A DNA stretch of 64,000 nt. Origin: Lepidodermella squamata. Its lineage: Eukaryota; Animalia; Gastrotricha. Under the pieces are notes generated by a model that was given only the letters and a program-made list of their open reading frames with translations, searched no databases and was not told the DNA's origin. The stretch lies in assembly GCA_047495785.1 (NCBI GenBank), contig JBLDXI010000054.1, forward strand, positions 1,736,001 through 1,800,000, read 5' to 3'. Below, piece by piece: positions 6,259 to 60,991 of the stretch. The number at the start of each line of letters is the position of its first letter. The first letter of the stretch is position 1. A program made the position numbers and the translations under genes.

Positions 6259-7558
6259 TCAAACTGACGTTCTGTTCGCGTCTATATCCAAGCCACTGAA
6301 CACCCGACTCTTCTCACCAGCCGTGTAATCGATTAATATCAGAAAATAAGTCATTAGAGTCGCTAAAAGCTGTAAAAATTAGACAAAAGTTAGACATCAT
6401 TTCAGGACGAAAAAAATGACTTACAGCAAAGACAATTTTCCGCCTGAGTTTGATCAATCCGACTAGTGTCAGACAAACATGGTTACTCTTGACTTGATGC
6501 AATAATATCGACAGCTGAAGCAGAGTTGGCGTATCTCTTGTAAGGTAACGCAGCCGGAATAATTTGGTTCTAACGCGTTCCGATGAGCGCTCAAGGTATG
6601 AAGAAGGGCCCAAGATTAGATAAAAAGCCAATATCGATGTAAATGCCCAGATTGCCTCAAAAAACTTGAGCAAAGGTGTCGAAGCCATGACAATACCATA
6701 AATGTGTTTCAGAGTGCCTAAAAAGCCGAAGCCAATTGTCAAAAAAGTCGCAGGGTGGATAGCTCGATCTAAATGGCGGACAGTTCGCATTAATTCACAG
6801 TGCCTAGTCTGGATTGTCTCGATCAGCCAGATGTCCGTATTTTTCTTCGCTATGTCGAACAAATCGCCTTTCGCGAGTTTCGCTATGAAATTCCCCAGTG
6901 CGACGAACTTCCACGCAACGAGAATTGCACATGCCGATATTGTAAAAAGTGAGAAGACTAAACCGGTATCAGAAACGAAGCTGAAAGCAACCCATGAAAC
7001 ACTGAGAATGTAGTAAAGATCGGTGCGGTTTCGCGGAATCAGCATATCTAGAGGGGTAGACCAACCGGGCACAGCTGATGGCTTCAAACCGAGCGCTGTA
7101 GCTACGAATATAGTGTTTGACCCATACAAAATCCAGCCGAAGAAGAAAGCTAGAATGAAGAGTCTGTTGCGTCGTTTAAGGTACTGCTCAGCGACTTCTG
7201 GTCCGAAAATGGCGGCATCGATAGTTTCAAACACAATTGGCTGAAATTTGTTACGCAAAGACCCAATAACCATTACGGTCCTCACGGTTGCACAGGCAGT
7301 GTAATGTGTTGTCAAAACTATCAAAGTGAACGTCATTTCTATGCTGCTGGAATGTGACGTTTCACTTGCGTAGGGCCATGCAAGTGACGAAGCTATCCGC
7401 CCGGCATTCAGCCAGGCAATCAGGATGAGGATGATGCAGTAAGCCTTGTAGTAGGTTCCGCAGCTTTTGTCTGGATCTCGGTTCCAATTTGGCGCCAAAC
7501 CAAGATATCTGCAACAGATGAGGAAAGGCTTCAGGGTCAAGTCTGACAGTTCAGACAT
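6259..7558 (-). CDS. Gustatory receptor-like (GRL / 7TM ion channel superfamily) protein, ~414 aa
   Basis: Multi-TM ORF. Phase-0 intron 6370-6424 gives C-terminus ...LTLVGLIKLRRKIVFA|LLATLMTYFLILIDY, matching the TM7 TYhhhhhQF signature of insect Gr/GRL. Confidence 0.85.
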
Positions 7559-7872
7559 AATATCCGCTTTAAATTTTGTCCGAAATTCGAAAATTCGAAA
7601 CACTTCTCTTCGCGCCTATGTCGTTCACATCGTCAAAAGACCGTTAATTATTTACTAAGAGTATTCTAGCTTTTCAATAAGTGCGTGCACGTCGCCAATT
7701 AATGAAGGGCTAAAGTGGGGGTGATGATGACTGTGTGCATGTGCGGCATTTTCACGTGAAAGATAGCAAACACTAATAGTAGGCTTGATCCCCCTCATCA
7801 AGGTGGCTATAATAGCTAAGTGTGATGAAATTTACGCCCCACACCTTAATGTTGGCACGAAAAATCGCTAAA

Positions 7873-9475
7873 ATGAAAATTGAAATTCTCTATTTTACAA
7901 TAACTATTATTGTCTTCGATGATAATCCGAGTAAAGCGGATGATGACTCATCGGAGTATGTGAGACAGTTCGAGCCTCATTATTGCAAGTAGCGAGAAAA
8001 AACCGAACATCAAGATTTTTCGCTCTTCCGAACGAGTTTCCATGGACGGTAGGACTTCATAAATGCATGGATTTTCTCATTTCTCATTGATTAAGGCTCG
8101 CTTGGAAACATTTTTTCCCGACACTCAAACTCGGCGGTTCTCTGAGGGAGTGCTAATATCGCCTTGTTGGATCCTAACAGCAGCCCATCCATGAATGGAT
8201 CCATGAAAACATCGGCTCTTTCCCTATAACACTCATGAGAGATTCGAACAGGCACCAAGGTAACACGCCGCTATTCCATAACGTTCAATCCTAATTTTGC
8301 TTTTCAAAGAGTGCGGATCGTACCCTCTGGTGTACAATGGTGTTGTTACAGCTTTTGGCAACGCTTCAGGCTGGCAGGTGAAATGTGACAATGGATTTTT
8401 TACTACGGCCGGGTCATCATACGGCTGGCTTGGATGTGTTGGTGGGGTACGGCGACAAAACAGCAACTTCGCAGAACAGCAAACGCGACAAAACAGCAAA
8501 TTTTTTATTTCGCGACAAAACAGCGAAAACTTCTGTGCAAAAGATGCACCGTGTTTCTGCTGTTATGTCGCAAGTTGTAAAATTTGCTGTTTTGTCGCGT
8601 TTGCTGTTTCGGGTATTTGCTGTTATGACGGTCTGCCGTTGGTGGCATTTGGGTCCAAGATAATCCTTGTGTTCGAAAAATTGAGCCTAACTAGTTCCGA
8701 GGCTCTTCTTTATTGAAAAATTCCGGATTCTAATTCTGTCCAACTGGCCACTACGATTGAAGTGGTAATTCATTCATAACTAAGTTTTTTGATCTTTCGC
8801 CTTGATCACTCAACCTTTTTAGGATCACCAGGAGCTGAGGCGTTTATTTGGCGAGGCTTGTGTTACTGGAGACATTACCAGTTTCCAAAATGTCTACGCC
8901 CAACTAAGAGCCGCGGAACCTGACATGGGGAAACTAATTCGTTGGCGAGACCCTGCAATAAACTGCTCCTGTTCAATCTGCCTACAGAACTCTACTTTCC
9001 TCCTCAAAACCCTCCAATGTAACGCGCAGGATGTCGACGTAATTGCCAGCCTCCTCATTGACCTCGGAGTCGATTTCAATGTCCCAGAGGCCTATTCCAA
9101 CAAAACAGCTCTTATCTTCGCTTCTCAGTTGGGTAGGGCGGATGTAGTTAGAATTCTGTTGAGAAAACGGGTCAATATCGCACATCTACGGCCTTTCTGC
9201 TCTGATCTACGCCACGAGGCAGGGTTTCATACAAGTTGTCAGATCTCTGCTATCATCTGGCGCGAATGCGAATGAAATCATTGTTGGAGGATCGACTCCC
9301 CTAATCATTGCTTCGGTTAACAATAGGACATCGGTCGCAGAGATTCTACTTCAAAACGGGGCGAGAAATACAATTGATCGACTAGATGAAATTTTCGGGA
9401 AAAGCGCGCTGATGCATGCTGTTAGCGGAAAATTCTTTGATCTGGCGCGAGTTTTACTTCGAAATGGAGCAGCAA
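7873..9475 (+). pseudogene. Pseudogene copy of the trypsin-like/CCP/ankyrin gene
   Basis: Relative to 20722-23014: frameshift in exon 1, most of the protease domain deleted at ~8190, MITE inserted in the CCP exon, frameshifting deletion at ~9185, truncated at ~9470. Confidence 0.85.
8446..8637. mobile_element. Palindromic MITE with 8-bp TSD (Merlin- or MULE-like)
   Basis: TSD gttggtgg at 8438-8445 and 8638-8645. Imperfect TIRs GGTACGGCGACAAAACAGCAA / revcomp GGCAGACCGTCATAACAGCAA. Internal cgacaaaacagc repeats. Absent from the paralogous site at ~21880. Confidence 0.85.
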
Positions 9476-9523
9476 TACCCGTAAATATTATTTTATTAAT
9501 AATAAAAGTCTTTCTATTCACAT

Positions 9524-10695
9524 TTAGGCCATCATCAAGCTTACTATGATAACATCGAAGATAGTCATGATTATACTGATTGCGATGAAAAATGCTCTGT
9601 CGATGAAAATCAGGCCGCATATTTTGTTTCTGGAACAGTTTTGAGCTGTTAGGCATAACATCACCAGGCTATAGATTGATATTAAAAACCCTGCGAGAAA
9701 TTGAACGAGGATGAAAATTGTAATGTAAGACACCTTAGCAGTTTCTGGTAAGAGGCTCGAGATTGTGGTTTGAAGGAACAAATCCGTGAGCAGCACTAGT
9801 TCAAAAGACTCGTAAAGAGATTAAACTGAGCTTGATAAAAGAACTTACAAGTGACACTGTAGATAGCTCTTTCAGTATCATCATGACTGATTAATCCAGT
9901 CATGCATTGCAGAATCTGAAGAGCAAACCATGGTATGAAGATGTTCGCGACATATGTTGTACTTTTTCGCTTGAAACTGAACTCTATTATGACTCGGCCG
10001 AACTTCTTTGAAGATCCCGGCATTTCGACGGTGTTATTTCTGTAAGTTAGACTGATCAGTTCCCAAACATCAGTTTTACCAGTGAAATTTCCATTAGCTA
10101 TCCAAAGAGAGTCGGGATTCATGTGAAAATTGAAGCGATTCGTATTTTGAGTCGACTCGAAAATAATTTCGCAATTCTGGGTATCAAAGGGGAATTTCAC
10201 AAAATTCATCTCGCATATAGTGCTGAATTCTTTAGGGATCATCCAAGAAACACTTGCGTCGGAATAAAAGTAAATATATGTTGACTGCTGAACAGTCTCG
10301 AAGGGCATTAAATCGGTTGCCCCATTGATCAGAACAATGACTGGATGCCATAACTTGCTTGCTTGGAATCGGACACAGGAAACGTCTCTGTGTATTGGAT
10401 CATCGGACCAGACAGTGCACGGATGACTCCATTTTATCTCCACCCTTGCCGTAAATATGAAAGTCTCATCGCGATCAATGAGGCTGCGGAACTCAATTGC
10501 GGTGAACATCATATTTATGTCGAGTGGAGTGCTGAAATTCAAGGATGGGCGAGATTGGCTTAAAAGATCGCATTTCTGAGTGAAAAGTTCCAACAAGTAC
10601 CCCTCATGGGACTGAAATGTTCTCTCCGGTGAAAGACTACAACATATTCCAGTTGAAAACGCAATATTCAAAGCAGCAATTGCAACGAGATGCAT
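9524..10695 (-). CDS. Atypical Cys-loop ligand-gated ion channel subunit A (~372 aa)
   Basis: Signal peptide, Cys loop CEMNFVKFPFDTQNC, intron 9796-9848 inside M2, four TM helices with a very short M3-M4 loop. Confidence 0.9.
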
Positions 10696-19120: not shown

Positions 19121-20422
19121 TTATTCAACTGACGTCCTGTTCGCATCTCTCTCCAAGCCACTGAACAACCGACTCTTCTCACCAGCCGTGTAATCGATTA
19201 AAATCAGAAAATAAGTCATTAGAGTCGCTAAAAGCTGTAAAAATTAGACAAAAAGTAGACATCGCTTCAGGACGAAAAAATGACTTACAGCAAAGACAAT
19301 TTTCCGCCTCAGCTTGATCAATCCGACTAGGGTCAGACAAACATGGTTGCTCTTGACTTGATGCAGTAATATCGACAACTGAAGTAGAGTTGGCGTATCT
19401 CTTGTTCGGTAACGCAATCGGAACAACTTTGTTCTAACACGTTCCGATGATCGCTCAAGGTATGAAGAAGGACCCAGGACTAGAATAACAGCCAATATTG
19501 ACGTAAATGCCCAGATTGCCTCGAAAAACTTGAGTAAAGGCGTTGAAGCCAGCACAATACCGTAAATGTGTTGTAGAGAGGCTAAAAAGCCGAAACCAAT
19601 TGAAAATAGTGTCGCAGGATGGATAGCTCGATCTAAATGGCGGACAGTTCGCATCAATTCACAGTGCCTAGTCTGGATTGTCTCGATCAGCCAGATGTCC
19701 GTATTTTTCTTCGCTATGTCGAACAAATCGCCTTTCGCGAGTTTCGCTATGAAATTCCCCAGTGCGACGAACTTCCACGCAACGAGAATTGCACATGCCG
19801 ATATTGTAAACAGTGAAAAGACAATTCCCGTATCAGACACGAAGCTGAAAGCAACCCATGAAACACTGAGAATGTAGTAAAGATCGGTGCGGTTTCGCGG
19901 GATTAGCATATCTAGAGGGGTGGACCAACCGGGCACGGCTGACGGCTTTAAACCAAGTGCTGTAGCCACGAAAATAGTGTTGGATCCGTACATAATCCAG
20001 CCGAGAAAGAAGGCTATGATGAAGAGTCTGTTGCGTCGTTTAAGGTACTGACCAGCGACTTCTGGTCCGAAAATGGTAGCATCGATAGTTTCAAAAACGA
20101 TTGGTTGAAATTTGTTACGCAATGATCCGATAACCACTACGGTTCTCACGATTGCCCCGGCTGTGTAATATGTTGTCAAAACTATCAAGGTGAAGGTCAT
20201 CTCTATACTGCTGGCATGTGGGGACTGACTGGCGTAAGGCCATGCTAGTGACGAAGCTATCCGCCCAGCATTCAGCCAGGCAATTAGGATGAGAATGATA
20301 CAGTAAACCTTGTAGTAGGTTCCACTGTTTTTGTCTGGATCTCGGTTCCAATTTGGCGCCAAACCGAGATATCTGCAACAGATGAGGAAAGGCTTCAAGC
20401 TCAAGTCTGACAGTTCAGACAT
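19121..20422 (-). CDS. Gustatory receptor-like (GRL/7TMIC) protein, paralog 2
   Basis: Near-identical to 6259-7558. Phase-0 intron 19235-19288. TM7 TYFLILIDY. Confidence 0.85.
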
Positions 20423-20721
20423 AATATCCGTTTTCGAATCAGTCTGAAAACTCGAAACATTCTTCTGCGCGACAATGACGTTCACATCGCCAAAACACCG
20501 TTAATTATTTACTATATTCAAGCTCTTCAACGAGTGCGTGCATGGCGCCAGTGAACTAAGGGCTAAAGTGGGTGTGATGATGGCTGTGTGTGCGGCATTT
20601 TCACGTGAAAGATTGCTAACTAATAGTTAGCATGATCCCCCTCATCAAGGTGGCTATAATAGCTAAGTGTGATGAAATTTACGCCCCACACCTTAATGTT
20701 GGCACGAAAAACCGCAAAAAA

Positions 20722-23014
20722 ATGAAAGTTGAAATTCTCTATTTTATTCTAATTATTGTTCTCAATGCTCATCTCAGTAAAGCGGATGTTTTGTCGGAGT
20801 ATGTTGAGACAGTTCGAGCCTCATTATTGCAAGTAGCGAGACAAAACCGAACATCAGGATTTTTCGCCCTTCCGAACGAGTTTCCATGGACGGTAGGACT
20901 TCATAAATGCATGGATTTTCTCATTTCTCATTGATTAAGGCTCGCTTGGAAATATTTTTTCCCGACTCTCAAACTCGGCGGTTCTGTGAGGGAGTGCTGA
21001 TATCGCCTTTTTGGATCTTAACAGCAGCCCATTGCCTGTCCGACGGACGTGGAGCTAATGCCTCATTTTGTATCGTTCATCTCGGAAAACACGACCTTGT
21101 TAAACAGAGAGAAACCGGAGAGATGCGACAGCCTGCCGAGCAATATTTCATCCACCCTAATTACACCCCGAACCGGCTGAATTACGACTTCGCTTTGGTC
21201 AAAATGAACTCTCCTGTTCGTTACTCGAGAGCTGTTGAGGCCATTGAGTTGCCCGATTACGCTTTTTGTTCGTCAAGGTACGATTATGGAACCAGACCGC
21301 CTTTCATCGATGGCGGGTGTATATTCGGAGTTTCAAGCGGCTGGAGCCAATCTGCAACAGTACTCCAAAAATCGTTTCTACCTCTGAATCCATTTTCTTT
21401 TTGCCTGAATTCATTCCAAAATGATTCAAGGCACTACTCTGATTCGAAGCTATGCGCTGGTGGGGTTAGTGCAGCTGAGGATCCGTGTAACCGAGATGCT
21501 GGCGGGCCGCTAATGTGCCAAGGCTCAGATTCCAAGCTTGTTCTCATTGGCATTTCTTCCTACAGCGACACGAGGGGCTGTGTCATGAGCAAACCTACTC
21601 CGACTATTTTTGCTCGAGTTTGCAAAGCGTTAGAATGGATTCATGAAAACATCGGCTCTTTCCCTATAACACTCATGAGAGATTCGAACAGGCACCAAGG
21701 TAACACGCCGCTGTTCCATAACGTACAATCCTAATTTTGCTTTTCAAAGACTGCGGCACCTATCCTTTGGTCTATAATGGAGTTGTTACAGCCTTTGGCA
21801 ACGCTTCAGGCTGGCAGGTGAAATGTGACAATGGATTTGTTACCACAACCGGGTCATCTTATGGCTGGCTTGGGTGTGTTGATGGTATTTGGGTCCAGGA
21901 TAACCCCTGCGTTCGGAAAGGTGAGCCTCGCAATTTCTTGGGCATACCTTTAATGAAAATTTTCAGATTCCAATTCAGTCCAATCGGCCACTACGATTGA
22001 AGTGGTAATCCATTGATGACTAGGTTTCTGGATCGTTTGCTTTTTTGATCGCTCATTATTTTTCAGGATCACCAGGAGCTGAGGCGTCTGTTTAGCGAGG
22101 CTTGTGTCACTGGGGACATTACTAGCTTTCAAAATGTCTACGCCCAACTTCGAGCCGCCGAACCTGATATGGAGAAGATAATTCGTTGGAGAGACCCTAC
22201 GATCAATTGCTCCTGTTCAATCTGCCTACAGAATTCTACTTTCCTTCACAAAACTCTTCAATGTAACGCGCAGGATGTCGACGTAATTGCCAGTCTCCTA
22301 ATTGACCTCGGGGTCGATATCAACGCCTCAGAGGCCTATACCAACAAAACAGCTCTTATCTTCGCTTCTCAGTTGGGCAGGGCAGATATAGTGAGAATTC
22401 TTTTGAGAAAACGTGTCAATATCACCCATCGGGACATCTACGGTCTATCCGCTCTGATCTACGCCACGAGGCAGGGTTTTCTACAAGTTGTTAGATCTCT
22501 GCTGTCATCTGGAGCGAATGCGAATGAAATAATCATTGGAGGATCGACTCCGCTAATCATTGCTTCAGTTAACAATAGGACATCGGTCGCGGAAATTCTA
22601 CTTCAAAACGGGGCGAGAAATACAATTGATCGACTAGATGAAATTTTTGGGAAAAGCGCGTTGATGCATGCTGTTAGCGGCAAATTCTTTGATCTGGCGC
22701 GAGTTTTACTTCGAAATGGAGCTGATCCTGATATTAGAGCTGAGAACTGTTTGAACCGAGGCTGCAACTGGTCGGGTTACACTGCCCTCATGTTTGCAGC
22801 AGAAGCTGGAGAGGTGGTAATGTCTCGCCTTCTTTTGGATCGTGGGGCTGATATTGACGTGGTGACGTTGTCGCAAGACGGGAAATTACAACCATTTACA
22901 GCTTTGGTCTTAGCTGCTGCGAATAACCATGTCGAAATGGTGCGATTGCTTCTTCGCAGGGGAGCTTCAAGGCTTGGCTGTATGAACCACATCCTTTGTA
23001 AAATGACAATTTGA
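20722..23014 (+). CDS. Signal peptide + inactive trypsin-like domain + CCP/sushi + ankyrin repeats (~695 aa, 5 exons)
   Basis: GT-AG introns 20893-20939, 21700-21749, 21921-21966 and 22005-22066 keep one open frame. TAAHC and DFAL are present but GDSGG has become RDAGG. Four-Cys CCP exon. TAL/TPL ankyrin repeats. Confidence 0.75.
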
Positions 23015-23076
23015 AACTCAGCATATCACAACAAAAATATTTTATTAATAATAAAAGTCTTTCTATAAACATTTAG

Positions 23077-24265
23077 TCAGGCCATCATCAAGATTACAAT
23101 GAGGAAATCGAAGATAATCATGATTATACTGATTGCGATGAAAAATGCTCTGTCGATGAAAATCAGGCCAATGACATTGCCGCATATTTTGTTTCGAGCC
23201 CAGTTTTGGGCTGATAGGTATAACATCACCAGGCTATGGATTGAAATTAGGAACCCCGCGAGAAACTGAACGAGGATGAAAACTGTAATGTAAGACATCT
23301 CCGCGGTTTCTGGTAGGAGGCTGGAGATTGTGGTTTGAAGGAACAAGTCCGTGAGCAACACTAGTTCGATTGACTCGTAAAGTAAAGTGATTTAACTGAG
23401 CTTGATAAAAGAACTTACAAGTGACACTGTAGATAGCTCTTTCAGCATCTTCATGACTCATTAGTCCAGTCATACATTGCAGAATCTGAAGAGCAAACCA
23501 TGGTACGAGGATGTTAGCGACATATGTTGTACTTTTTCGTTTGAAACTGAACTCTATAATGACCTGGCCGAATATCTTTGAAGATCCCGGCGTTTCAACG
23601 GTGCTATTCCTATAAGTTTGGCCGATGAGTTCCCAAACATCCGTCTTGCCTATGAAATTTTCATTTGCTATCCAAAGAGAATCGGGCTTCATGTGGAAAT
23701 TAAAGCGATTCATATTTTGGGCCGACTCAAAAATGATTTCACAATTCTGGGTATCAAACGGGAATTTCATGAAATTCATCTCGCATAGAACGCTGAATTC
23801 CTTCAATATCATCCAAGACACACTTCCGTCGGAGTAAAAGTAAATATATGTTGACTTCTGAACAGTCTCGAAGGGCATCAAATCTGTTGCACCATTCTTA
23901 AGAACTATAACTGGATGCCATAGCTTGCTTGCTTGGAATCGGATGCTGCTAACGTCTTTGTATACAGGATCATCAGACCAAACTGTGCATGGATGGTTCC
24001 ATCTAATCTCCGTCCTCGCCGTAAAAGTGAAAGTCTCATCGCGATCAATGAGGCTGCGAAATTCGATTGCGATGAAAATGATATTCATGTCGAGTGGAGT
24101 GCTGAAATTCAAGCTTGGGCGGGATTGGCTTAAGAGATCGCATTTCTGGGTGAAAAGTTCCAACAAGTAACCCTCCTGGGACTGGAAAGTTCTCTCCGGT
24201 GAAAGATCACACCATATCCCAGCTGAAAACGCAATATTCAGAGCAGCAGTTGCAAGATGATGCAT
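23077..24265 (-). CDS. Atypical Cys-loop LGIC subunit B (~376 aa), duplicate of A
   Basis: Cys loop CEMNFMKFPFDTQNC. M2 intron 23361-23418. Confidence 0.9.
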
Positions 24266-25090
24266 GATCCGTCTAGATTTGTCTAGTATGGGAAGCAACC
24301 AATTGGACAATATTGGCAGATATTGGACAATATTTCGAGCTGTTCGTAATTTCCGGCCTATCTGATCATCTCACTGGTTATATGTTTGTTTAGATGTGAG
24401 CGCGTCAAATAGCTGCGAGCTTTGCATGTCGGGGAATCCTTTCTCCAGGATGTTAGCTCAATGATTGAATTGACAATAATGAAATCATCTGTGCTTATTG
24501 AAAAAAAACGATTCACGAAATCTCCGGAGATCAAATTTGAAGTTATAGGCGGCATAGTGCTGTAGAACCAAATACATGATTCCTATATGTTACAGGCGAG
24601 CCATATACCGCTTGATGCTGAGAAGTTACAGAGTGTGAGTTGATTCCGGGGGTTTACACCAATATTTAATGGTAACCAGAGAAGAGGGCATCAGATAGGA
24701 AATTATCATATGGGAAATTATTCCAGCGAAAACAAATGATTTAAAAATGGCATACTTTAAATTTTTACAGTTAGGCCAACTCTTTTGATTTTTTTGATGG
24801 TCACATTCTGTGAGCAGAAACTTGAGTTACCTCAGTTTTATCTTCACGACGACTTTACTATGGCAGTTTAATGAGAAGGTCGTTGCACTCTAGCCGTCTG
24901 GTTAAGATTAGAAATATATGAGTTTAAGCTAAGGCCATTGATAAACTGGCATTCGGCATGAAAAAATTATTTCTGCACGCGTCTGTGAAAATAGGATCAT
25001 ATCAAAACAACCAATATTGAGACGCCCAATTCAAATATTATACACAAAAAATCAGATTTACGAGAAATTATTTTTTGAATCGCAGAGGCA

Positions 25091-36472: not shown

Positions 36473-38120
36473 GACATCTGTGAAATGCTCATCGCGTGCA
36501 TTTTGATATCTCAGATTGATGAGTGCTTGCACAGCTGAACTAATATGGCGCTACCAACATTGCGTGGGTATAGCAGTTAAAGTGGCTGTTTTTCAAAACG
36601 ATATTTGTATTTTTGATGCTTCCAACTTGATAACATTTCCTTGCATGATTAATGATTTCCCATGAGCGCACGTTGCTTGTTTACGTAAAAAATCTATATT
36701 GTTGGGCTAATACAATGCGCATGTATAATGAAGCTTAATGGGCGATGAATTTCCTGGCATAAATCTTGATTGATTAATTGATTTAAGGAGAGGGCCATTT
36801 AAAAACCTGGAATTGCTGGCTCGACGATTGTTTGTACTAATTAGCAAACACAGATGGACCAAAATCGATGATTTGATGAATTCATATCGCTTTCACACCG
36901 TCAGCATCGAAGAAGTAGTTGCATGGCGGGATGCAACTTATCGAAAAAAGCCAGAAAACAAAGATTGCATTGGAAAATCTGAAAGGCAAACATTTTAGAG
37001 TTCTTCTGTTCGATTTGTCCATGAGGCTTCAAAATAACAGTTGCCACTGCAGATCTTATTTCCAAGATTTCTGACAATGAGGTTTGATCTTACTTCAGAT
37101 AATGTCTCTTTTGTCGCGATTCAAAATGTGAAATGCAGAACGCGGGGTTAAAGCTCTAATGATGATGCCTATTTCGCATGGCATAATCATTCGCATGTCC
37201 TTGCATACATACACATCTAGCTGTTTTCTGTAATTCGGTCTTCACCCCACAAAGAACGTGATAAACTTCGATATCATGACCATCGAGTCATGGAAAGAAC
37301 ACGCTTCGTCAGGCGAATATCTGCAAGGCGGTGGATAGACTTCCCGCTTCCCAGAGATAAAGTTACAACTTCTCTCCTGTTTCCTGTTTATTTGTATCAT
37401 GGTCTTGCAGGCGACAGCGGAATCCCTTAATACAACGACAAGATAACCCCTGCAATTTTAAGCAGCGTCACGTCCTTACAATAATATTAAATGAGATAAA
37501 GTAACGCCAGCAATGCTCCGACATTTTTTACCCACCTTTTCTACCTCGACTTCAAAAGTCTGAGGGGCCATCAATAAACGCTGAACCTCTTCAGATTATT
37601 CACCATACGATGAAATTATTTACCACGAACATAATTTTACAACCTTTTGAAACTACATTCTGAAATAAGCGAGGTGAGAGTTTCAAGATCAATATTTCTG
37701 AGCATCCTAAAAACTAACGTAGCGTTAGTGAAACTTTTGATAAGAGATATACTCATCCCCACCATAGTTCGTTGTTTATGCCTAACCACCCGGGCATCGT
37801 TCAATTTCTCATTTTACAACTCAGCCAAGCGTCGAATCTTCATAGATTTTCAACACCAATGCATAGATTCGCCATAAGTCAGCGCTTTGTCCTCCTGGAA
37901 ATTCCCAATTTGTGGAAATTCCCAATTAACTTATTAGCATGTTGTTGACCTCATTAGCCTTCAGGTGTCAGGTTGAATGTATATAGGTTTCATAATTCTG
38001 AGCTGTTATCCCTGGCCACTAATCTGAGTTGAAATATGGTTTAACTGCTCAATGTATAGTTGCTGCTATATGACTGCTGATGCTTGGTGTTTGCCTTTTA
38101 GATATCATTTTTTATTCCCC

Positions 38121-40373
38121 ATGCATATCGGTAAAACTACGAAGGAGATCCTTGCTATCTCCTTAGCCCTCATAATTGCGGCTACATCTGGGTTGAAAGA
38201 TAACACGCTGAAGATGCTGGCCCTCGTGCCGCGAACGGGTTACTTGCCTAGAGACGGCCGCATGTGCATGGCAGCAATGAGAGTTGCAATCGACGAAGCG
38301 AATAAGAAGCCCGATATATTACCAGACTACAAAATCGAACTGGTCGTAGCGGATGAGGGTCCTGGAAGCCTCTTCAGCCCGAGAAATCTTATCAGCTTTA
38401 TTGAATCTCCGAAGAATGGATCCACATTCGTTTCACCAATCATATATGGGAGTTATTATCAATGTCAAACCTTTCACAGCGTGGCCCGTGAGTTAAAAAT
38501 GGCTATTTTGAGCCCGGGATGTTCAGGCTACGCTCTTCTCAACCGCCAAAAATTTCCCAACATCTATCGAACAATGCCTCCAAGTGATCAAACTGGCCCG
38601 GTGAAAGTTCAGATTTTGAGGCATATCGGAAAATGGCATCAAATCGGAATAGTCGTCAATGTAGTGAATCCAAACAGTTTCGCCACCGCGAAATCGTTCT
38701 ATAACGATGCAGTCAGGTCTGGAGTAAGTATTGTGTATTTCACGTCAGTGACAGACTTTTCTGAAGATGATATCGATGACTTGATGGCCAGTGGGGCGCG
38801 AATTGTTGATCTGCTGATGGTTGAGACTTTACTCATCGTTAAATTCCTCTGCTATGGCTATTTACGCGGATTTAGAGCACCGAGGTTCCTGATTCTTACA
38901 TTGACCTCGAATTTCATCGATCCAGATTCATTCAACCAATTGCCACAAGGGTGTTCAAAGGCTATTATTGCTGAGCAGTTGAAGATAACTATTTTCTATG
39001 GAAATTCACTCACACCCGTGAAGAATTTTGGAGAAACCTATCTCGGCTACGATTTGACTGGATACATGGCTCGATTGGATAATCTCACGAACGGCACCAG
39101 ATCGCCGGATTACGAGCAAAGTTTCTCTTGTCACGACTCAGCTATGCAGGCTGTCGTAGCCCTCCACCAATCAGAAATAACTCTCAAGTCGAGAAACCTC
39201 TCACTGAAAAATTTCGACGGTTCACCCGGTAAAGTTTACGAGGTTGTTGAGAAGCACCTGCGCGAAACAGACTTCATGGGAATTCGAGCTGGGCGTGTAA
39301 AATATTCGACTCAGGTAGAATTTGATTCTGAGGAAAACTATGCCATACAGAGGCATGATAACCAGATGCGCTATGTAGCAACATTCAGCTTGAAACCCGG
39401 TTCCTTTAATGAATATACCTACACGCCACTGTCAAACCCGATTTGGCAGACTTCGAGTGGAACACCTCCGAAAGATTTATCCAATATCACTATTATTAGT
39501 GTAAAAATACAGTTCTTCATTCAACCTCTTTTCATAACTCTGACCGGTCTGGTGAGCATTGGGCAGGTTTTCTTTCTTTTCTGCAAGTTTCCCCTCTCGA
39601 AAGCGGCTCGAATATTGGATTCCAGCTTTTTCATTGGCTGTTTGTTAGTGAACGCTTCGGCCATCTTCCAGATAGTTGCTCCTACAACGGCCATTTGCAT
39701 CGGCCGTGAGTTTTCAATTATTGCTGGAGCTTCGATTTTGAACGCTGTTTTGCTGCTCAAAATTTGGGAGCTCAGGCATTCGAGACAAAAATCTCTGTCG
39801 CGAGCTATAATCGAAGAATTTCACGATTCGAACGTAGCTGGGATGTACAGGCGAACCGTGGCTCGAGGAGTCGTAATTATTTACAACTTGCCACGGGAAC
39901 GGAAAACCTTGTTTGTTGTATTGCTGCTTGTCCTAAACATTGCGCTGTACGTGGTAAGGTGTTTTGTCGACGAACCTTTCGTAGACCTATCAGTTAGGCC
40001 GGTATATTACGATGAAAGCGCAGATGAATACGTTCAGGTCAGAATCAACTCCTGTCGGTCGGTAAATGAAGCGGCATGGCTTGGGGGATTCGCTCTTTTG
40101 CATTTTCTACTGATCGCTGGGATCAGCTGTTTCCACCTGCAAAGTGCTCACGCGAAGATATCGGAAGAAGACGGTCAACTTACGAACAAGAATTTGCGCG
40201 CTGATCGGCTAACTTCTTGGAACTTGTTGATGCTATTCGTCTTTGCGGCGTTACTTGTGTTTATTTTACCGAATGATGTTTCGGTTCGAGCAGGATGCTT
40301 TAGCGCTGTCCTCATTGCGATTTCATTGTCTTCAATGACCTTGTATTCAATTTGGAAACTCCCGTCGTCGTAA
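38121..40373 (+). CDS. Intronless GABA-B-like class C GPCR 1 (VFT + 7TM, no CRD, no C-terminal tail)
   Basis: Signal peptide, AMRVAIDEAN..DILPDY, FPNIYRT, W..SGTPPKD linker, 7 hydrophobic helices with TM3 Cys/KIW and ECL2 Cys. Confidence 0.88.
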   Translation: MHIGKTTKEILAISLALIIAATSGLKDNTLKMLALVPRTGYLPRDGRMCMAAMRVAIDEANKKPDILPDYKIELVVADEGPGSLFSPRNLISFIESPKNGSTFVSPIIYGSYYQCQTFHSVARELKMAILSPGCSGYALLNRQKFPNIYRTMPPSDQTGPVKVQILRHIGKWHQIGIVVNVVNPNSFATAKSFYNDAVRSGVSIVYFTSVTDFSEDDIDDLMASGARIVDLLMVETLLIVKFLCYGYLRGFRAPRFLILTLTSNFIDPDSFNQLPQGCSKAIIAEQLKITIFYGNSLTPVKNFGETYLGYDLTGYMARLDNLTNGTRSPDYEQSFSCHDSAMQAVVALHQSEITLKSRNLSLKNFDGSPGKVYEVVEKHLRETDFMGIRAGRVKYSTQVEFDSEENYAIQRHDNQMRYVATFSLKPGSFNEYTYTPLSNPIWQTSSGTPPKDLSNITIISVKIQFFIQPLFITLTGLVSIGQVFFLFCKFPLSKAARILDSSFFIGCLLVNASAIFQIVAPTTAICIGREFSIIAGASILNAVLLLKIWELRHSRQKSLSRAIIEEFHDSNVAGMYRRTVARGVVIIYNLPRERKTLFVVLLLVLNIALYVVRCFVDEPFVDLSVRPVYYDESADEYVQVRINSCRSVNEAAWLGGFALLHFLLIAGISCFHLQSAHAKISEEDGQLTNKNLRADRLTSWNLLMLFVFAALLVFILPNDVSVRAGCFSAVLIAISLSSMTLYSIWKLPSS

Positions 40374-58714: not shown

Positions 58715-60991
58715 ATGCATCTCGGTGCAGCTACCAAGAAAATTCTTGCTACATGCGTCGCCCTTACAATTGCGGCAACATCAGGGCTGAAAGAAAGCAC
58801 GCTGAGGATGCTGGCTCTCGTACCACGAACCGGTTACTTACCCAGAGACGGCCGCATGTGCATGGCAGCAATGAGAGTTGCAACTGATGAAGTAAATAAG
58901 AAACTCGATATATTACCAGATTACAAAATCGAACTGGTAGTGATGGATGAGGGTCCTGTAGGCCTCTTCAGCCCGACGAATCTCATCGGCTTTATTGAAT
59001 CCCCGAGAAATAAATCCACTTTTATTTCGCCGATCATACTTGGGAGTTATTATCAATGTCAAACCTTTCATAACGTGGTCCGTGAGTTCAAAATGGCGAT
59101 GGCGAGTCCGAGTTGTACAGGCTTTGGCCTTCTCAACCGCCAAAAATTTCCCAACATCTATCGAACATCGCCTCCAAGTGGTCAAACTAACCTGGTGAAA
59201 ATTCAGATTTTAAGCCATATCGGAAAATGGCGGCAAATTGGGATCGTCGTCAATGCTGTGAATTCGAACAGTTTCGCTACCGCGAAATCGTTCTACAACG
59301 ATGCAGTTAGGTCTAATGTAAGTATTGTGTATTTCACGACGGTTACGGACTTTTCGGAGGAGGAAATCGATAATTTGATGGCAAGTGGGGCGAGAATAGT
59401 TGATCTGCTAATTGTTGAGATTCCGCTTGTCGTTAGATTCCTCTGCTATGGCTATTTACGCGGATTTAGAGCACCGAGGTTCCTGATTCTTACGCTGACT
59501 ACGAATTTTATTGACCCAGATTCATTCAGTCAATTACCACAAGGATGCACGAAGGAGATTATTGCCGAGCAGTTGAAAATTACAATTTTCTATGGGAATT
59601 CATTTACACCCGTGCAAAACTTTGGAGAAACCTACTTGGGCTACGACTTGACTGGATACATGGCCCGACTAGATAATCTCACAAACGGTACTCGATCGCC
59701 GGATTACGAGCAAAGTTTCGCTTGTCACGATTCAGCGATGCAGGCTATCGCAGCCCTCCACCAGTCAGAAATTACTCTCAAGTCGAGGAACCTTTCACTG
59801 AAAAACTTTGACGAATCACCTGGCAAGGTTTTTGAGGTTATTGAGAAGCACCTTCGCGAAACAGACTTCATGGGAATTCGAGCCGGGCGCGTAAAATATT
59901 CGACCCGGGTCGAATTTGAAACAGAAGACTTCTATGCTTTACAGAGGCATGGAAACCAAATCCGCTACCTGGCAACATTCACCTTGAAGCCCGGTTCTTT
60001 TAATGAATATACTTACACGCCACTGTCAACCCCGATTTGGCAGACATTTAGTGGTAAACCCCCGAAAGATTTATCCAATATCACTCTCATTGTCGTCAAA
60101 ATACAGTTCTTTATTCAACCAATTCTCATAACTCTAACCGGACTAGTAAGTATTTGGCAAGTGGTCTGTCTTTTCCGCAAATTTCCGGTGTCAAAAGTAG
60201 CGCGAATACTGGATTCCAGCTTTTTCCTTGGTTGCTTGTTAGTGAACGCTTCGGCCATTTTCCAGATATTTGATTCTACAACTGTTGCCATCTGCATCGG
60301 CCGGGAATTATCACTCATTATTGGTTTCTCGATATTAACCGCTGTTTTGCTCCTGAAAATTTGGGAGCTCTCAAACTCCAGAAAAGAATTTCGGTCCCAA
60401 GCCAGCATTAGAGGATCTCGATATTCGAACTTCAGAATGGTCACCTGGCGACCTGGAGCTCGAACTTCTGCAATAATGTACAAAATGCCCGAGGAACGCA
60501 AAACCAGGCTCATTTTCCTGCTAATTTTCCTGAATCTTGCATTGTATGTCGTGAGATGCTCTGTCGACCAGCCATCCGTAGAGATATCCATCAGGCCGAT
60601 TTATTACGATGAAAACGCAGATGAATACGTTCAGGTGAGAATTTACTCCTGCTGGTCGGCTAATGAAGCGCCATGGCTTGGAGGTTTTGCTCTCTTGCAT
60701 TTTCTTTTGATAGCGATTATCAGCTGTGTTCATATTCAAAATGCTCACGTGATGTTAGCGAAAAAACGAGGTCTACTGACGGTTAAGAATTTGCGTGCTG
60801 ATCGACTAACGTCTTGGAATCTCCTGATGCTATTCGTCTTTGCAGTGTTGCTTGTTTTTATTTTACCGGATGATGTTTCAGTTCGAGCAGGATGCTTCAG
60901 CGCTGTACTAATCGCGATTTCATTGTCTTCAATGACCTTGTATTCGAGTTGGAAACTGCAATCAGGAAAAATTCACCCGCAATCACTTTAA
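58715..60991 (+). CDS. Intronless GABA-B-like class C GPCR 3
   Basis: 758 aa intact paralog of 38121-40373. Confidence 0.88.
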   Translation: MHLGAATKKILATCVALTIAATSGLKESTLRMLALVPRTGYLPRDGRMCMAAMRVATDEVNKKLDILPDYKIELVVMDEGPVGLFSPTNLIGFIESPRNKSTFISPIILGSYYQCQTFHNVVREFKMAMASPSCTGFGLLNRQKFPNIYRTSPPSGQTNLVKIQILSHIGKWRQIGIVVNAVNSNSFATAKSFYNDAVRSNVSIVYFTTVTDFSEEEIDNLMASGARIVDLLIVEIPLVVRFLCYGYLRGFRAPRFLILTLTTNFIDPDSFSQLPQGCTKEIIAEQLKITIFYGNSFTPVQNFGETYLGYDLTGYMARLDNLTNGTRSPDYEQSFACHDSAMQAIAALHQSEITLKSRNLSLKNFDESPGKVFEVIEKHLRETDFMGIRAGRVKYSTRVEFETEDFYALQRHGNQIRYLATFTLKPGSFNEYTYTPLSTPIWQTFSGKPPKDLSNITLIVVKIQFFIQPILITLTGLVSIWQVVCLFRKFPVSKVARILDSSFFLGCLLVNASAIFQIFDSTTVAICIGRELSLIIGFSILTAVLLLKIWELSNSRKEFRSQASIRGSRYSNFRMVTWRPGARTSAIMYKMPEERKTRLIFLLIFLNLALYVVRCSVDQPSVEISIRPIYYDENADEYVQVRIYSCWSANEAPWLGGFALLHFLLIAIISCVHIQNAHVMLAKKRGLLTVKNLRADRLTSWNLLMLFVFAVLLVFILPDDVSVRAGCFSAVLIAISLSSMTLYSSWKLQSGKIHPQSL

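Follow-up and report, generated by a model that had tools for sequence, protein, structure and literature searches.

Does the + strand at 20722-23014 encode one exported protein in which a trypsin-like domain and a complement control protein-type (CCP) module are joined to ankyrin repeats, or do two separate genes lie side by side? The question arises in a window of 64,000 nucleotides, the whole stretch of DNA that we analysed, where the ORF track splits the locus into ORFs 20907-21734 and 22169-23014. An earlier note on this DNA had proposed that four short GT-AG introns with phases 0,1,1,0 join these pieces into a frame of about 695 aa. We consider it probable that 20722-23014 is one intact five-exon gene, whose product of 695 residues enters the secretory pathway, has no membrane span and belongs to a genome-specific family.

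Gene model and the joining of the ankyrin exon

The proposed frame and introns were reproduced: the joined exons amount to 2085 nt, or 695 codons, and stay open in frame when the junction frames are computed. Exon 1 (20722..20892, + strand, as are all features below) holds the start codon, a signal-peptide-like leader of ~21 residues and a pro-region ending in ..NEFPWT. Exon 2 (20940..21699) encodes an S1 (chymotrypsin-fold) serine-protease homologue that appears catalytically dead, exon 3 (21750..21920) one CCP (sushi) module, and exon 4 (21967..22004), a mini-exon of 38 nt, a Ser/Thr-rich linker (DSNSVQSATTIEV). A Cys-containing helical N-cap (residues 1-75), six ankyrin repeats, a C-terminal Cys pair and the stop codon follow in exon 5 (22067..23014). 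The introns measure 47, 50, 46 and 62 nt and are all GT..AG, with the junctions (slash at the exon border) ACG/GTAGGA..TTAAG/G, AAG/GTAACA..CAAAG/A, AAG/GTGAGC..TTTTCAG/A and GTG/GTAATC..TTTTCAG/G.

Upstream lies a probable core promoter with the 5' UTR (20640..20715), including a TATA-like box (CTATAATA, ~20654-20661). This block of ~75 nt is identical in a duplicate copy of the locus at 7136-10030, described below. An in-frame ATG further upstream (20632) is TTG in the duplicate, and a 2-nt indel there breaks the frame. Because 20640..20715 appears to be conserved as non-coding sequence, ATG 20722 is the likely start. At the other end, a polyadenylation signal AATAAA (23050..23055) stands 36 nt 3' of the stop codon and is the only one between 20500 and 23300.

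The joining of the exons into one gene rests on evolutionary comparison. The frame of this exon contains a TGA six codons before the acceptor 22067, and its first ATG (22169) comes only at residue 35; with the frame closed upstream and no earlier ATG, the ankyrin exon must be internal. Comparing the 34 codons before this ATG (22067-22168) with the duplicate gives 11 synonymous changes and 1 non-synonymous change (dN/dS 0.02), distributed 3/0/9 over the codon positions (p = 7e-7), which suggests strong purifying selection in frame. The earlier note had named an ankyrin ORF with a promoter of its own as evidence against the fusion; the codons upstream of ATG 22169 instead appear to be coding and contain no ATG. 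Residues 1-31 of exon 5 form confident cap helices in a structural model, and 21 paralogue sequences have an N-cap that aligns with them. We used this family alignment because matches to repeats swamped a BLAST comparison of the individual exons with four paralogue ORFs. Finally, four paralogues (L013, L014, L015, L016) each contain trypsin, CCP-like and ankyrin parts within one unbroken ORF, 700-881 aa long; the three searched with Pfam (L013, L015, L016) all match Trypsin and Ank, and L016 matches Sushi as well.

These data bear directly on the possibility that two genes lie next to each other, one for a secreted pseudoprotease with a CCP, ending by read-through at a TGA near 22000, and one for a separate cytosolic ankyrin protein, starting at ATG 22169 and perhaps trans-spliced at 22066 in an operon-like arrangement. 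The split in the ORF track, the short gap between the two ORFs, an AATGAA variant signal at 21952 and the normally cytosolic location of ankyrin repeats all speak for it. We nevertheless regard it as highly improbable, since the codons that it would leave untranslated evolve as coding sequence and encode structural cap helices conserved across the family, since all 20 of the paralogue N-cap exons examined open just past a stop and without an ATG, and since the continuous-ORF paralogues prove that the fusion exists. We also found no AATAAA in the interval from exon 3 to exon 5, so a canonical poly(A) signal is absent between the two parts. The claim that this is one gene was therefore upheld.

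Within a fused gene, the mini-exon may be questioned. A single intron of 156 nt from donor 21910 to acceptor 22067 would place the last CCP Cys directly before the ankyrin N-cap; this join is open and in frame, and it gives exactly the five-residue spacing from Cys to cap seen in the continuous paralogues L013, L015 and L016. We think it unlikely. Its donor, TGC/GTTCGG, is weak, whereas the mini-exon has strong splice sites on both sides, and the intron would be three times the size of the others in the gene. In the duplicate, the mini-exon is conserved (34/38 identical) and its two flanking introns are not (74/108; Fisher p = 0.01). Paralogue L033 also contains an equivalent mini-exon of 32 nt, encoding PLTTTPITTTT, between a phase-1 and a phase-0 intron as in the 20722-23014 gene. 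We therefore retain the five-exon model with its mini-exon, although the two splice forms may occur side by side.

A probably exported chain of three domain types

The leader provides the only window resembling a transmembrane segment (19-residue Kyte-Doolittle average 1.68), with an h-region of 10 residues (ILYFILIIVL) and a likely cut after LSKA, judged by hydropathy and the -3/-1 rule. All other windows stay below 1.5, the highest (1.46) being the buried TAAHC strand. The join between exons 1 and 2, PWTV/ARLEIF, matches the continuous PWMVRLEIF of paralogue L002, and leaders are also present in the paralogues. In exon 5 there are 9 Cys, five of them in the N-cap (exon-5 residues 13, 48, 50, 53 and 66) and four in the pairs 228/233 and 305/311. 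The exon also has 7 N-glycosylation sequons where 2.3 are expected (p = 0.009). Trypsin and CCP folds require disulfides. Considering the leader, these folds, the excess of sequons and the leaders of the paralogues, the protein is predicted to be exported with the ankyrin part in the same chain, in line with the earlier prediction of secretion and no transmembrane helix.

The N-terminal hydrophobic stretch could also be a signal anchor or go unused, leaving the protein tethered as a type II membrane protein or in the cytosol. Translation from ATG 20632 would favor the anchor by placing the stretch 30 residues in; this ATG, however, lacks conservation and falls out of frame in the duplicate, in a stretch whose conservation is promoter-like. 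The hydrophobic core is moreover just ~10 residues long, with a cleavage motif of small residues after it, and the trypsin fold and CCP module, which depend on disulfides, are incompatible with a location in the cytosol. Membrane tethering or cytosolic retention is accordingly quite improbable, and export remains our reading.

The trypsin-like domain had been described as keeping His and Asp, with the catalytic Ser changed to Ala and no IVGG start; Pfam and alignments with protein C and L002 agree. PF00089 (Trypsin) matches exon 2 at 4.1e-35 and covers 197/220 profile positions, and 30 proteases in the PDB match at E<1e-20, with protein C and kallikrein the best (~1e-25). The closest trypsin domain is that of L002 (45%). 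Aligned with protein C, His57 (21030-21032) and Asp102 (21186-21188) are present, and the position of Ser195 is occupied by Ala (GCT, 21498-21500, in the motif NRDAGGP), a codon found in all read contigs that cover the site. Gly193 is replaced by Arg and Asp189 is kept. The activation site lacks IVGG, reading QNR/TSGF here versus SSR/IVGG in L002. The domain belongs to S1 by fold and sequence, while the complete catalytic triad and the zymogen activation site (R/K then IVGG) are missing; given Ser195 to Ala and Gly193 to Arg, it would be a non-peptidase homologue and not an active S1 member, with neither activation nor catalysis expected to be possible. It nevertheless seems to be under constraint, as 10/11 variants at 21029-21278 in other contigs of run X1 (genomic DNA) are synonymous. 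The domain contains an odd number of Cys (11), as does the ankyrin exon.

Exon 3 was claimed to encode a single CCP module, and three lines of evidence bear this out. The four-Cys and Trp pattern (C..C..C..W..C) spans 53 residues, CCP chains of complement factor H match at 1.7e-6, and a profile built from CCPs of the same genome scores 16.9 bits, versus 13.9 for the best of 1000 shuffles. The exon thus has the features of a CCP or sushi module (four Cys and a Trp, ~60 residues, a profile match). Pfam reports no Sushi on this exon at E<0.1, which indicates that the module is divergent. Versus the duplicate it shows 19 synonymous and 4 non-synonymous changes (dN/dS 0.04).

Exon 5 was said to carry about seven ankyrin repeats, and we count six TxLxxA repeats and a capping pseudo-repeat. 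Pfam Ank matches six stretches at 1.5e-39. The AlphaFold (AF2) model has a pLDDT of 92.5, with residues 2-31 forming two helices at pLDDT >93, and in Foldseek ~300/315 residues align to DARPin and ankyrin-B solenoids with probability 1.0. These results fit tandem 33-residue helix-turn-helix repeats forming a solenoid. A large profile-free search with the exon was uninformative, its best 150 matches being giant ankyrin proteins ranked on summed repeat scores, none of which covers the N-cap.

A genome-specific family and a decayed duplicate

The N-cap defines a large family. At least 80 N-cap/ankyrin modules are encoded in the genome, and 82 own-genome matches were found, many beginning at query residues 3-10. 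The N-cap motif of the family is ..L..AC.., WRD, NxT-LLH, C. The 20722-23014 gene belongs to this family, as its N-cap opens an internal exon just past a stop without an ATG, and the trypsin and CCP parts lie upstream in the same reading unit. Among the 20 nearest of 80 N-cap loci, five have trypsin and CCP, two have CCP alone, and at the other 13 neither lies within 5 kb, so the protease appears to be an optional head of the family. Loci L013-L016 and L028-L036 have the same N-cap motif and domain order as well as leaders; for L002, no ankyrin part was found in the 3.7 kb examined.

Family members vary in size and in their active site. They have one to three CCPs and up to ~30 repeats, in contrast to the one CCP and ~7 repeats found here. 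Most of the members with a protease that we examined retain GDSGGP or GDSGSP and are likely to be active, unlike the 20722-23014 gene; L033 also has a dead protease. Judged by its sequence, then, our gene represents a small, catalytically dead member in a large genome-specific family, in which others appear to place an active trypsin-like protease, CCPs or a leader alone before the same ankyrin module.

The duplicate used as a comparator (7136..10030, + strand) is a decayed segmental copy of 20000-23600, 87-92% identical in four blocks. The copy lacks 1 nt of exon 1, 600 bp of the trypsin exon, 8 bp of exon 5 and 315 bp at the 3' end; its CCP exon has gained an insertion of ~190 bp, and in intron 3 GT has become TT and AG has become GG. 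It has thus lost both splice sites of this intron. It is a pseudogene, so dN/dS values obtained with it reflect past selection. A search for sequencing runs containing the locus found none from RNA and a single genomic one, X1. Its two joints were considered as splicing and rejected, since 21032>21633 corresponds to the in-window duplicate and 20956>21493 to another deleted version. Introns 3 and 4 are 65% and 71% identical to the duplicate and the exons 85-90%. In the 5' third (20000-21750, introns 1-2 included) identity is 90-100%, which gene conversion probably explains. The contrast between exons and introns is consequently valid for the 3' part only, and whole-segment identity alone is misleading. 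No diversifying selection was seen in the comparison with 7136-10030 (dN/dS ~0.1).

The dead neighbor raises the possibility that the gene itself is a decaying relic, the change from Ser to Ala marking a loss of function on the way to the state of the duplicate. The loss of both the catalytic Ser and the activation site is consistent with this, as is a relaxed dN/dS of ~0.67 over exon 1 together with the 5' part of exon 2, a value based on few sites. Decay is still very improbable in our view: all five exons are open, the splice sites, start codon and poly(A) signal are intact, exons 3-5 are under strong purifying selection, and the synonymous bias of the variants extends into the dead protease domain. 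Inactive S1 homologues are also a well-known functional class, of which L033 gives a second example in the family. We therefore continue to treat 20722-23014 as an intact gene.

Possible role and comparison with known systems

We propose that the product is a non-catalytic extracellular binder or adaptor. In the order of its domains, an S1 homologue that keeps the fold, disulfide Cys, His57, Asp102 and the Asp189 pocket would be followed by the CCP, the Ser/Thr linker and the ankyrin solenoid, and the substrate-binding cleft of the dead protease and the ankyrin groove could each hold a partner. Families that include both enzymes and non-enzymes typically mark proteolytic cascades that use cofactors. 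On a broader and rather doubtful reading, the family would be a large extracellular recognition repertoire built on the ankyrin fold, a counterpart of LRR- or Ig-based receptor repertoires, in which Cys- and glycan-stabilized arrays are fused either to active proteases, the effectors, or to dead ones that serve the same cascade as adaptors, decoys or regulators.

The textbook ankyrin repeat is an intracellular module. An exported ankyrin protein under selection would show that an animal has adapted the fold to its secretory pathway and employs an entire gene family of this kind outside the cell. With 695 residues, this compact member is easy to express and suits tests of natural extracellular ankyrin binders (secretion, glycosylation, disulfide caps, ligands). 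There is also a lesson for annotation, as ORF-based calling cuts such trypsin-CCP-ankyrin genes into two.

The earlier note had called the architecture unusual and the protein novel. The architecture is not a one-off, as there is the large own-genome family. The bare Trypsin+Ank pairing also exists outside this genome, though rarely, with only one contig and one bacterial cluster found. A word search with a continuous paralogue ORF gave no close relatives among 62 matches and Trypsin+Ank in one of them, P0009 (472 aa, Logan contig of ERR1740140). Like our gene, P0009 places a trypsin domain before ankyrin repeats in one chain; it differs in its apparently active IVNG/GDSGGP protease, its ~3 repeats and the absence of a CCP and of a Cys-bearing N-cap, and it begins with a Cys-rich module that looks clip-like by eye, with no call from Pfam. 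The bacterial cluster (ESM Atlas, 53 members) shares the Trypsin+Ank pair and is a feature-level lead only (score 0.90). A word search with a paralogue N-cap found no public protein among those of 245-780 aa compared by shared 5-mers, which is weak evidence of absence. The literature searched yielded nothing on secreted proteins of the trypsin-ankyrin type, and the phrase 'extracellular ankyrin' appeared once, for latrotoxin.

Latrotoxins and the designed DARPins are examples of ankyrin solenoids at work outside cells. Latrotoxins consist of N-terminal wing and body domains and ~20 ankyrin repeats. They differ from the 20722-23014 product in being pore-forming and in having no signal peptide, protease or CCP; they were absent from the word search, the exon-5 search and Foldseek. 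DARPins, the best structural matches of the exon-5 model, are synthetic. No sequence kinship with either was found beyond the repeat itself, and no result of the analysis points to the toxin-like role that the earlier note had put forward beside recognition or defence.

On the protease side, the complement-type modular proteases MASP, C1r, C1s and factor C are secreted and likewise combine a trypsin-like domain with CCP modules in one chain. Their CCPs are N-terminal to an active protease and accompanied by CUB/EGF, whereas the CCP of the 20722-23014 product follows a dead protease and precedes the ankyrin repeats. Vertebrate haptoglobin is a secreted protein that, like the 20722-23014 product, joins a chymotrypsin-fold domain with Ser195 changed to Ala to one or more CCP modules. 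It is non-catalytic and acts purely by binding. It differs in that the CCP precedes the protease-like domain, His57 is lost too and there are no ankyrin repeats; specific sequence kinship was not found, the best PDB matches being protein C and kallikrein.

Serine-protease homologues have been surveyed (PMC1761132; PMC10036332). The clip-domain homologues of arthropods (PPAF-II, masquerade) are secreted and share with our protein an S1 homologue without the catalytic Ser and an added binding module. They differ in that this module is an N-terminal clip domain instead of a C-terminal CCP with ankyrin repeats, that Ser is usually replaced by Gly, and that as a rule they undergo cleavage at an activation site, one that the 20722-23014 product lacks. 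Arthropod homologues act as cofactors or adaptors of active proteases in immune cascades. By analogy with them and with haptoglobin, the 20722-23014 product may be a cofactor, decoy or scaffold for its active protease paralogues or their targets.

Gene architecture and the inactive protease domain

The gene at 20722-23014 (+) reads from the sequence as five exons in frame on the + strand: exon 1 (20722-20892), exon 2 with the trypsin domain (20940-21699), exon 3 with the CCP module (21750-21920), a mini-exon 4 (21967-22004) and the ankyrin exon 5 (22067-23014). The coding parts sum to 2085 nt, or 695 codons, and the four introns, all GT-AG, measure 47, 50, 46 and 62 nt and have phases 0, 1, 1 and 0. 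This reproduces the frame of about 695 aa proposed in the earlier note, including its remark that the ORF track fragments the gene: a mechanical ORF list cuts it into four (20632-20934, 20907-21734, 21737-22000, 22169-23014). Between 20500 and 23300, AATAAA occurs just once, 36 nt past the final stop.

Domain searches, run exon by exon, agreed with the proposed inactive trypsin fold, single CCP module and approximately seven ankyrin repeats. Exon 2 encodes a trypsin domain (Pfam 4.1e-35); among solved structures, protein C and plasma kallikrein match it best (~1e-25). Aligned to protein C, it retains TAAHC (His57), YDFALV (Asp102) and, at the bottom of the pocket, Asp189, whereas the active-site motif GDSGGP of protein C reads NRDAGGP, with Ser195 replaced by Ala (GCT, 21498-21500) and Gly193 by Arg. 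The activation site is also gone, with QNR/TSGF in place of the SSR/IVGG of the closest paralogue. Exon 3 shows the four-Cys and Trp pattern of a CCP; Pfam did not report Sushi there at E<0.1, and the exon matches factor H CCP chains (1.7e-6) and scores 16.9 bits with a profile of own-genome CCPs (best of 1000 shuffles, 13.9). Exon 5 is ankyrin (Pfam 1.5e-39), with six TxLxxA repeats and a capping pseudo-repeat; its AlphaFold model, built on a family alignment of 19 sequences, has a pLDDT of 92.5, and Foldseek aligns ~300 of 315 model residues to DARPin and ankyrin-B solenoids.

Contigs of the genomic DNA run X1 that deviate from the window over 21029-21278 carry 11 differences, 10 of them synonymous third-position changes (p = 5e-6). 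They do not derive from the decayed duplicate of the gene at 7136-10030, because it lacks this interval. GCT is present at 21498-21500 in every X1 contig covering these positions. The dead domain is therefore conserved as a protein. One X1 contig (depth ~55) links 20956 to 21493 via 8 foreign letters, a deleted version that fits neither the gene nor its duplicate in the window. Because X1 departs from the assembly at 20868, at 22681 and, by a single nucleotide, at 20716, it may come from another individual.

Just 5' of ATG 20722 is a ~75 nt block with a TATA-like box, identical in the duplicate; an upstream in-frame ATG at 20632 is TTG there, and its frame is lost. The leader (h-region ILYFILIIVL, then LSKA/D) is the sole stretch with TM-like hydrophobicity (KD19 1.68). 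As the earlier note held, no TM helix is evident elsewhere in the hydropathy scan, where the next window (1.46) is the buried TAAHC strand. Since trypsin folds and CCP modules are disulfide-dependent, a secretory route is to be expected. Exon 5 encodes nine cysteines (five in the N-cap, the family-specific helical start of the exon, plus a loop-insertion pair and a C-terminal pair) and seven N-x-S/T sequons against 2.3 expected by composition (Poisson p = 0.009). An N-x-T ahead of LLH recurs in most paralogues; this is only partly independent evidence, since the same Thr serves in the TPLH of the repeat. We therefore predict that the product is probably exported.

A probable single gene and its decayed duplicate

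A search of sequencing runs found this DNA in one run only, X1, which is genomic, and in no RNA run; whether the locus comprises one gene or two was therefore decided from evolution and family anatomy. A separate ankyrin gene would start at ATG 22169, within exon 5. The 34 exon-5 codons upstream of this ATG differ from the duplicate by 11 synonymous and 1 non-synonymous changes (dN/dS 0.02), distributed 3/0/9 by codon position (binomial p = 7e-7); the values are 34 and 11 (0.09) downstream of it and 19 and 4 (0.04) for the CCP exon. Identity to the duplicate is 65% in intron 3 and 71% in intron 4, against 85-90% in the adjoining exons. Exon 5 has no ATG ahead of residue 35, and a TGA closes its frame six codons 5' of acceptor 22067. 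A selected coding stretch without a start codon implies that exon 5 is internal, and because exons 3 and 4 both lack an in-frame ATG, the chain reaches back to ATG 20722. The residues before ATG 22169 form two cap helices in the AlphaFold model (pLDDT above 93) and align to the N-cap motif in 21 paralogue sequences; they are thus predicted to be structural. The independent ankyrin start that the earlier note named as its refutation is contradicted by these selected codons and the lack of an earlier ATG. With the continuous-ORF paralogues described below, they make a single gene very likely.

Enumerating every GT..AG combination left one other sensible in-frame join, from donor 21910 (TGC/GTTCGG) to acceptor 22067, which skips the mini-exon and yields the same distance from Cys to cap as in the continuous paralogues. 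We favour the two-intron model over it: its splice sites are far better, its intron sizes agree with those of the remaining introns, and the mini-exon is identical to the duplicate at 34/38 positions, compared with 74/108 in the flanking introns (p = 0.01). Moreover, the arrangement recurs at the equivalent position in L033, the nearest of the ankyrin-linked relatives, where a mini-exon of 32 nt (PLTTTPITTTT) is preceded by an intron of phase 1 and followed by one of phase 0. With either join, the CCP module is fused to the ankyrin part.

The duplicate matches 20000-23600 and takes in parts of both neighbouring genes. Its protease-ankyrin copy is dead: the trypsin exon has a 600-bp deletion, the CCP exon a ~190 bp insertion, both intron-3 splice sites are gone, exon 1 lacks 1 nt and exon 5 lacks 8 bp, with a 315-bp deletion at the 3' end. 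The substitution pattern indicates that the two copies diverged under constraint before this death. Inverted repeats of the GCGACAAAACAGC type lie inside the insertion (8446-8637), which resembles a small transposon. Divergence is very uneven, with 96-100% identity over introns 1-2 and the promoter (20000-21750) and differences at 25-48% of synonymous sites in the 3' part (21750-22722), which suggests that the 5' part recently underwent gene conversion.

Relatives within and outside the genome

The N-cap has 82 matches in its own genome, many starting at query residues 3-10. All 20 paralogue N-cap exons examined lack an ATG and open a few codons past a stop, as a rule behind an 'FQ' that derives from TTTCAG. 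In four paralogues (L013, L014, L015, L016), a single ORF of 700-881 aa runs without interruption through a trypsin domain, a CCP-like module and ankyrin repeats, so that the fusion exists without any splicing assumption; Pfam called Trypsin and Ank in all three searched (L013, L015, L016) and Sushi in L016.

Among the 20 nearest N-cap loci, trypsin and CCP lie upstream in five, CCP only in two, and neither within 5 kb in 13, some of which have a leader-like ATG ORF upstream. This points to the ankyrin module as the constant part of the family and the protease as an optional head. At L021, L026, L029, L034 and L037, where the N-cap exons have no trypsin or CCP upstream, leader-like ATG ORFs (e.g. 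MKALLLSILVLSAIACAA..) stand 0.1-1.7 kb upstream, which fits leader-only exported ankyrin proteins. Locus L020 (G000:C42:4672865-4679119) has four tandem N-cap matches within 6 kb, three preceded by a CCP module, and no trypsin domain; its CCP would be a different head on the same module.

A second member with a dead protease is L033, which reads TSASC for TAAHC and GEPGSP for GDSGGP and has its own leader and three CCPs; the remaining protease-bearing members examined retain GDSGGP or GDSGSP. The nearest relative of the trypsin domain (45%), L002 (G000:C30:492080-495799), is a predicted active protease with a leader, IVGG and GDSGGP. An ORF behind it encodes CCP modules (two by pattern search) and another trypsin domain, a dead one (GDWGAP), with no ankyrin ORF within the 3.7 kb examined.

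Beyond this genome, a word search that took the ORF of a continuous paralogue as query returned 62 matches. Just one of them, P0009 (472 aa; 1520-nt Logan contig of ERR1740140), has both Trypsin and Ank. Its complete ORF encodes a trypsin domain, predicted active, then about three ankyrin repeats, an independent public example of this order; its Cys-rich N-terminal module is clip-like by eye and was not called by Pfam. The ESM Atlas holds a bacterial Trypsin+Ank cluster of 53 members (a lead only). A word search with a paralogue's N-cap (proteins of 245-780 aa, shared 5-mers) matched no public protein, matches in a library-wide HMMER search with exon 5 were swamped by giant ankyrin proteins, and our literature search found no paper on trypsin-ankyrin proteins of this kind. 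The claim of an unusual architecture therefore holds in part: the Trypsin+Ank pairing, found in P0009 and the bacterial cluster, seems rare but not unique, while the full order of trypsin, CCP, linker and Cys-capped ankyrin was found by these word, N-cap, ESM Atlas and HMMER searches only in its own genome.

Neighbouring genes and possible role

The neighbours are receptor genes with long open exons at 19244-20485 (-), 23234-24310 (-), 38052-40373 (+) and 58715-60991 (+), namely a 7tm_7 gustatory-type receptor, a Cys-loop channel ligand-binding domain and two class-C GPCRs (ANF_receptor + 7tm_3).

What is new here is the architecture, for which the single-gene case appears unusually well supported; its parts (S1 homologues, CCP, ankyrin) are known. 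The earlier interpretation is right on architecture, and export is probable, as predicted from the leader, the disulfide folds and the sequons; its recognition, defence or toxin-like role is a putative one. Nothing suggests a toxin. The ankyrin part is conservative relative to the duplicate (dN/dS ~0.1), so there is no sign of diversifying recognition in this member. The protein would lack enzyme activity and bind through three surfaces: the dead S1 domain, with the Asp189 pocket and most of the cleft retained, the CCP module and the ankyrin groove. Since the same ankyrin module is joined to active proteases in relatives, a role as adaptor, decoy or regulator within that extracellular system would be the most economical reading. 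The closest working analogies are haptoglobin, a pure binder that combines CCP with a Ser195Ala S1 domain, and the arthropod serine-protease homologues, cofactors of protease cascades.
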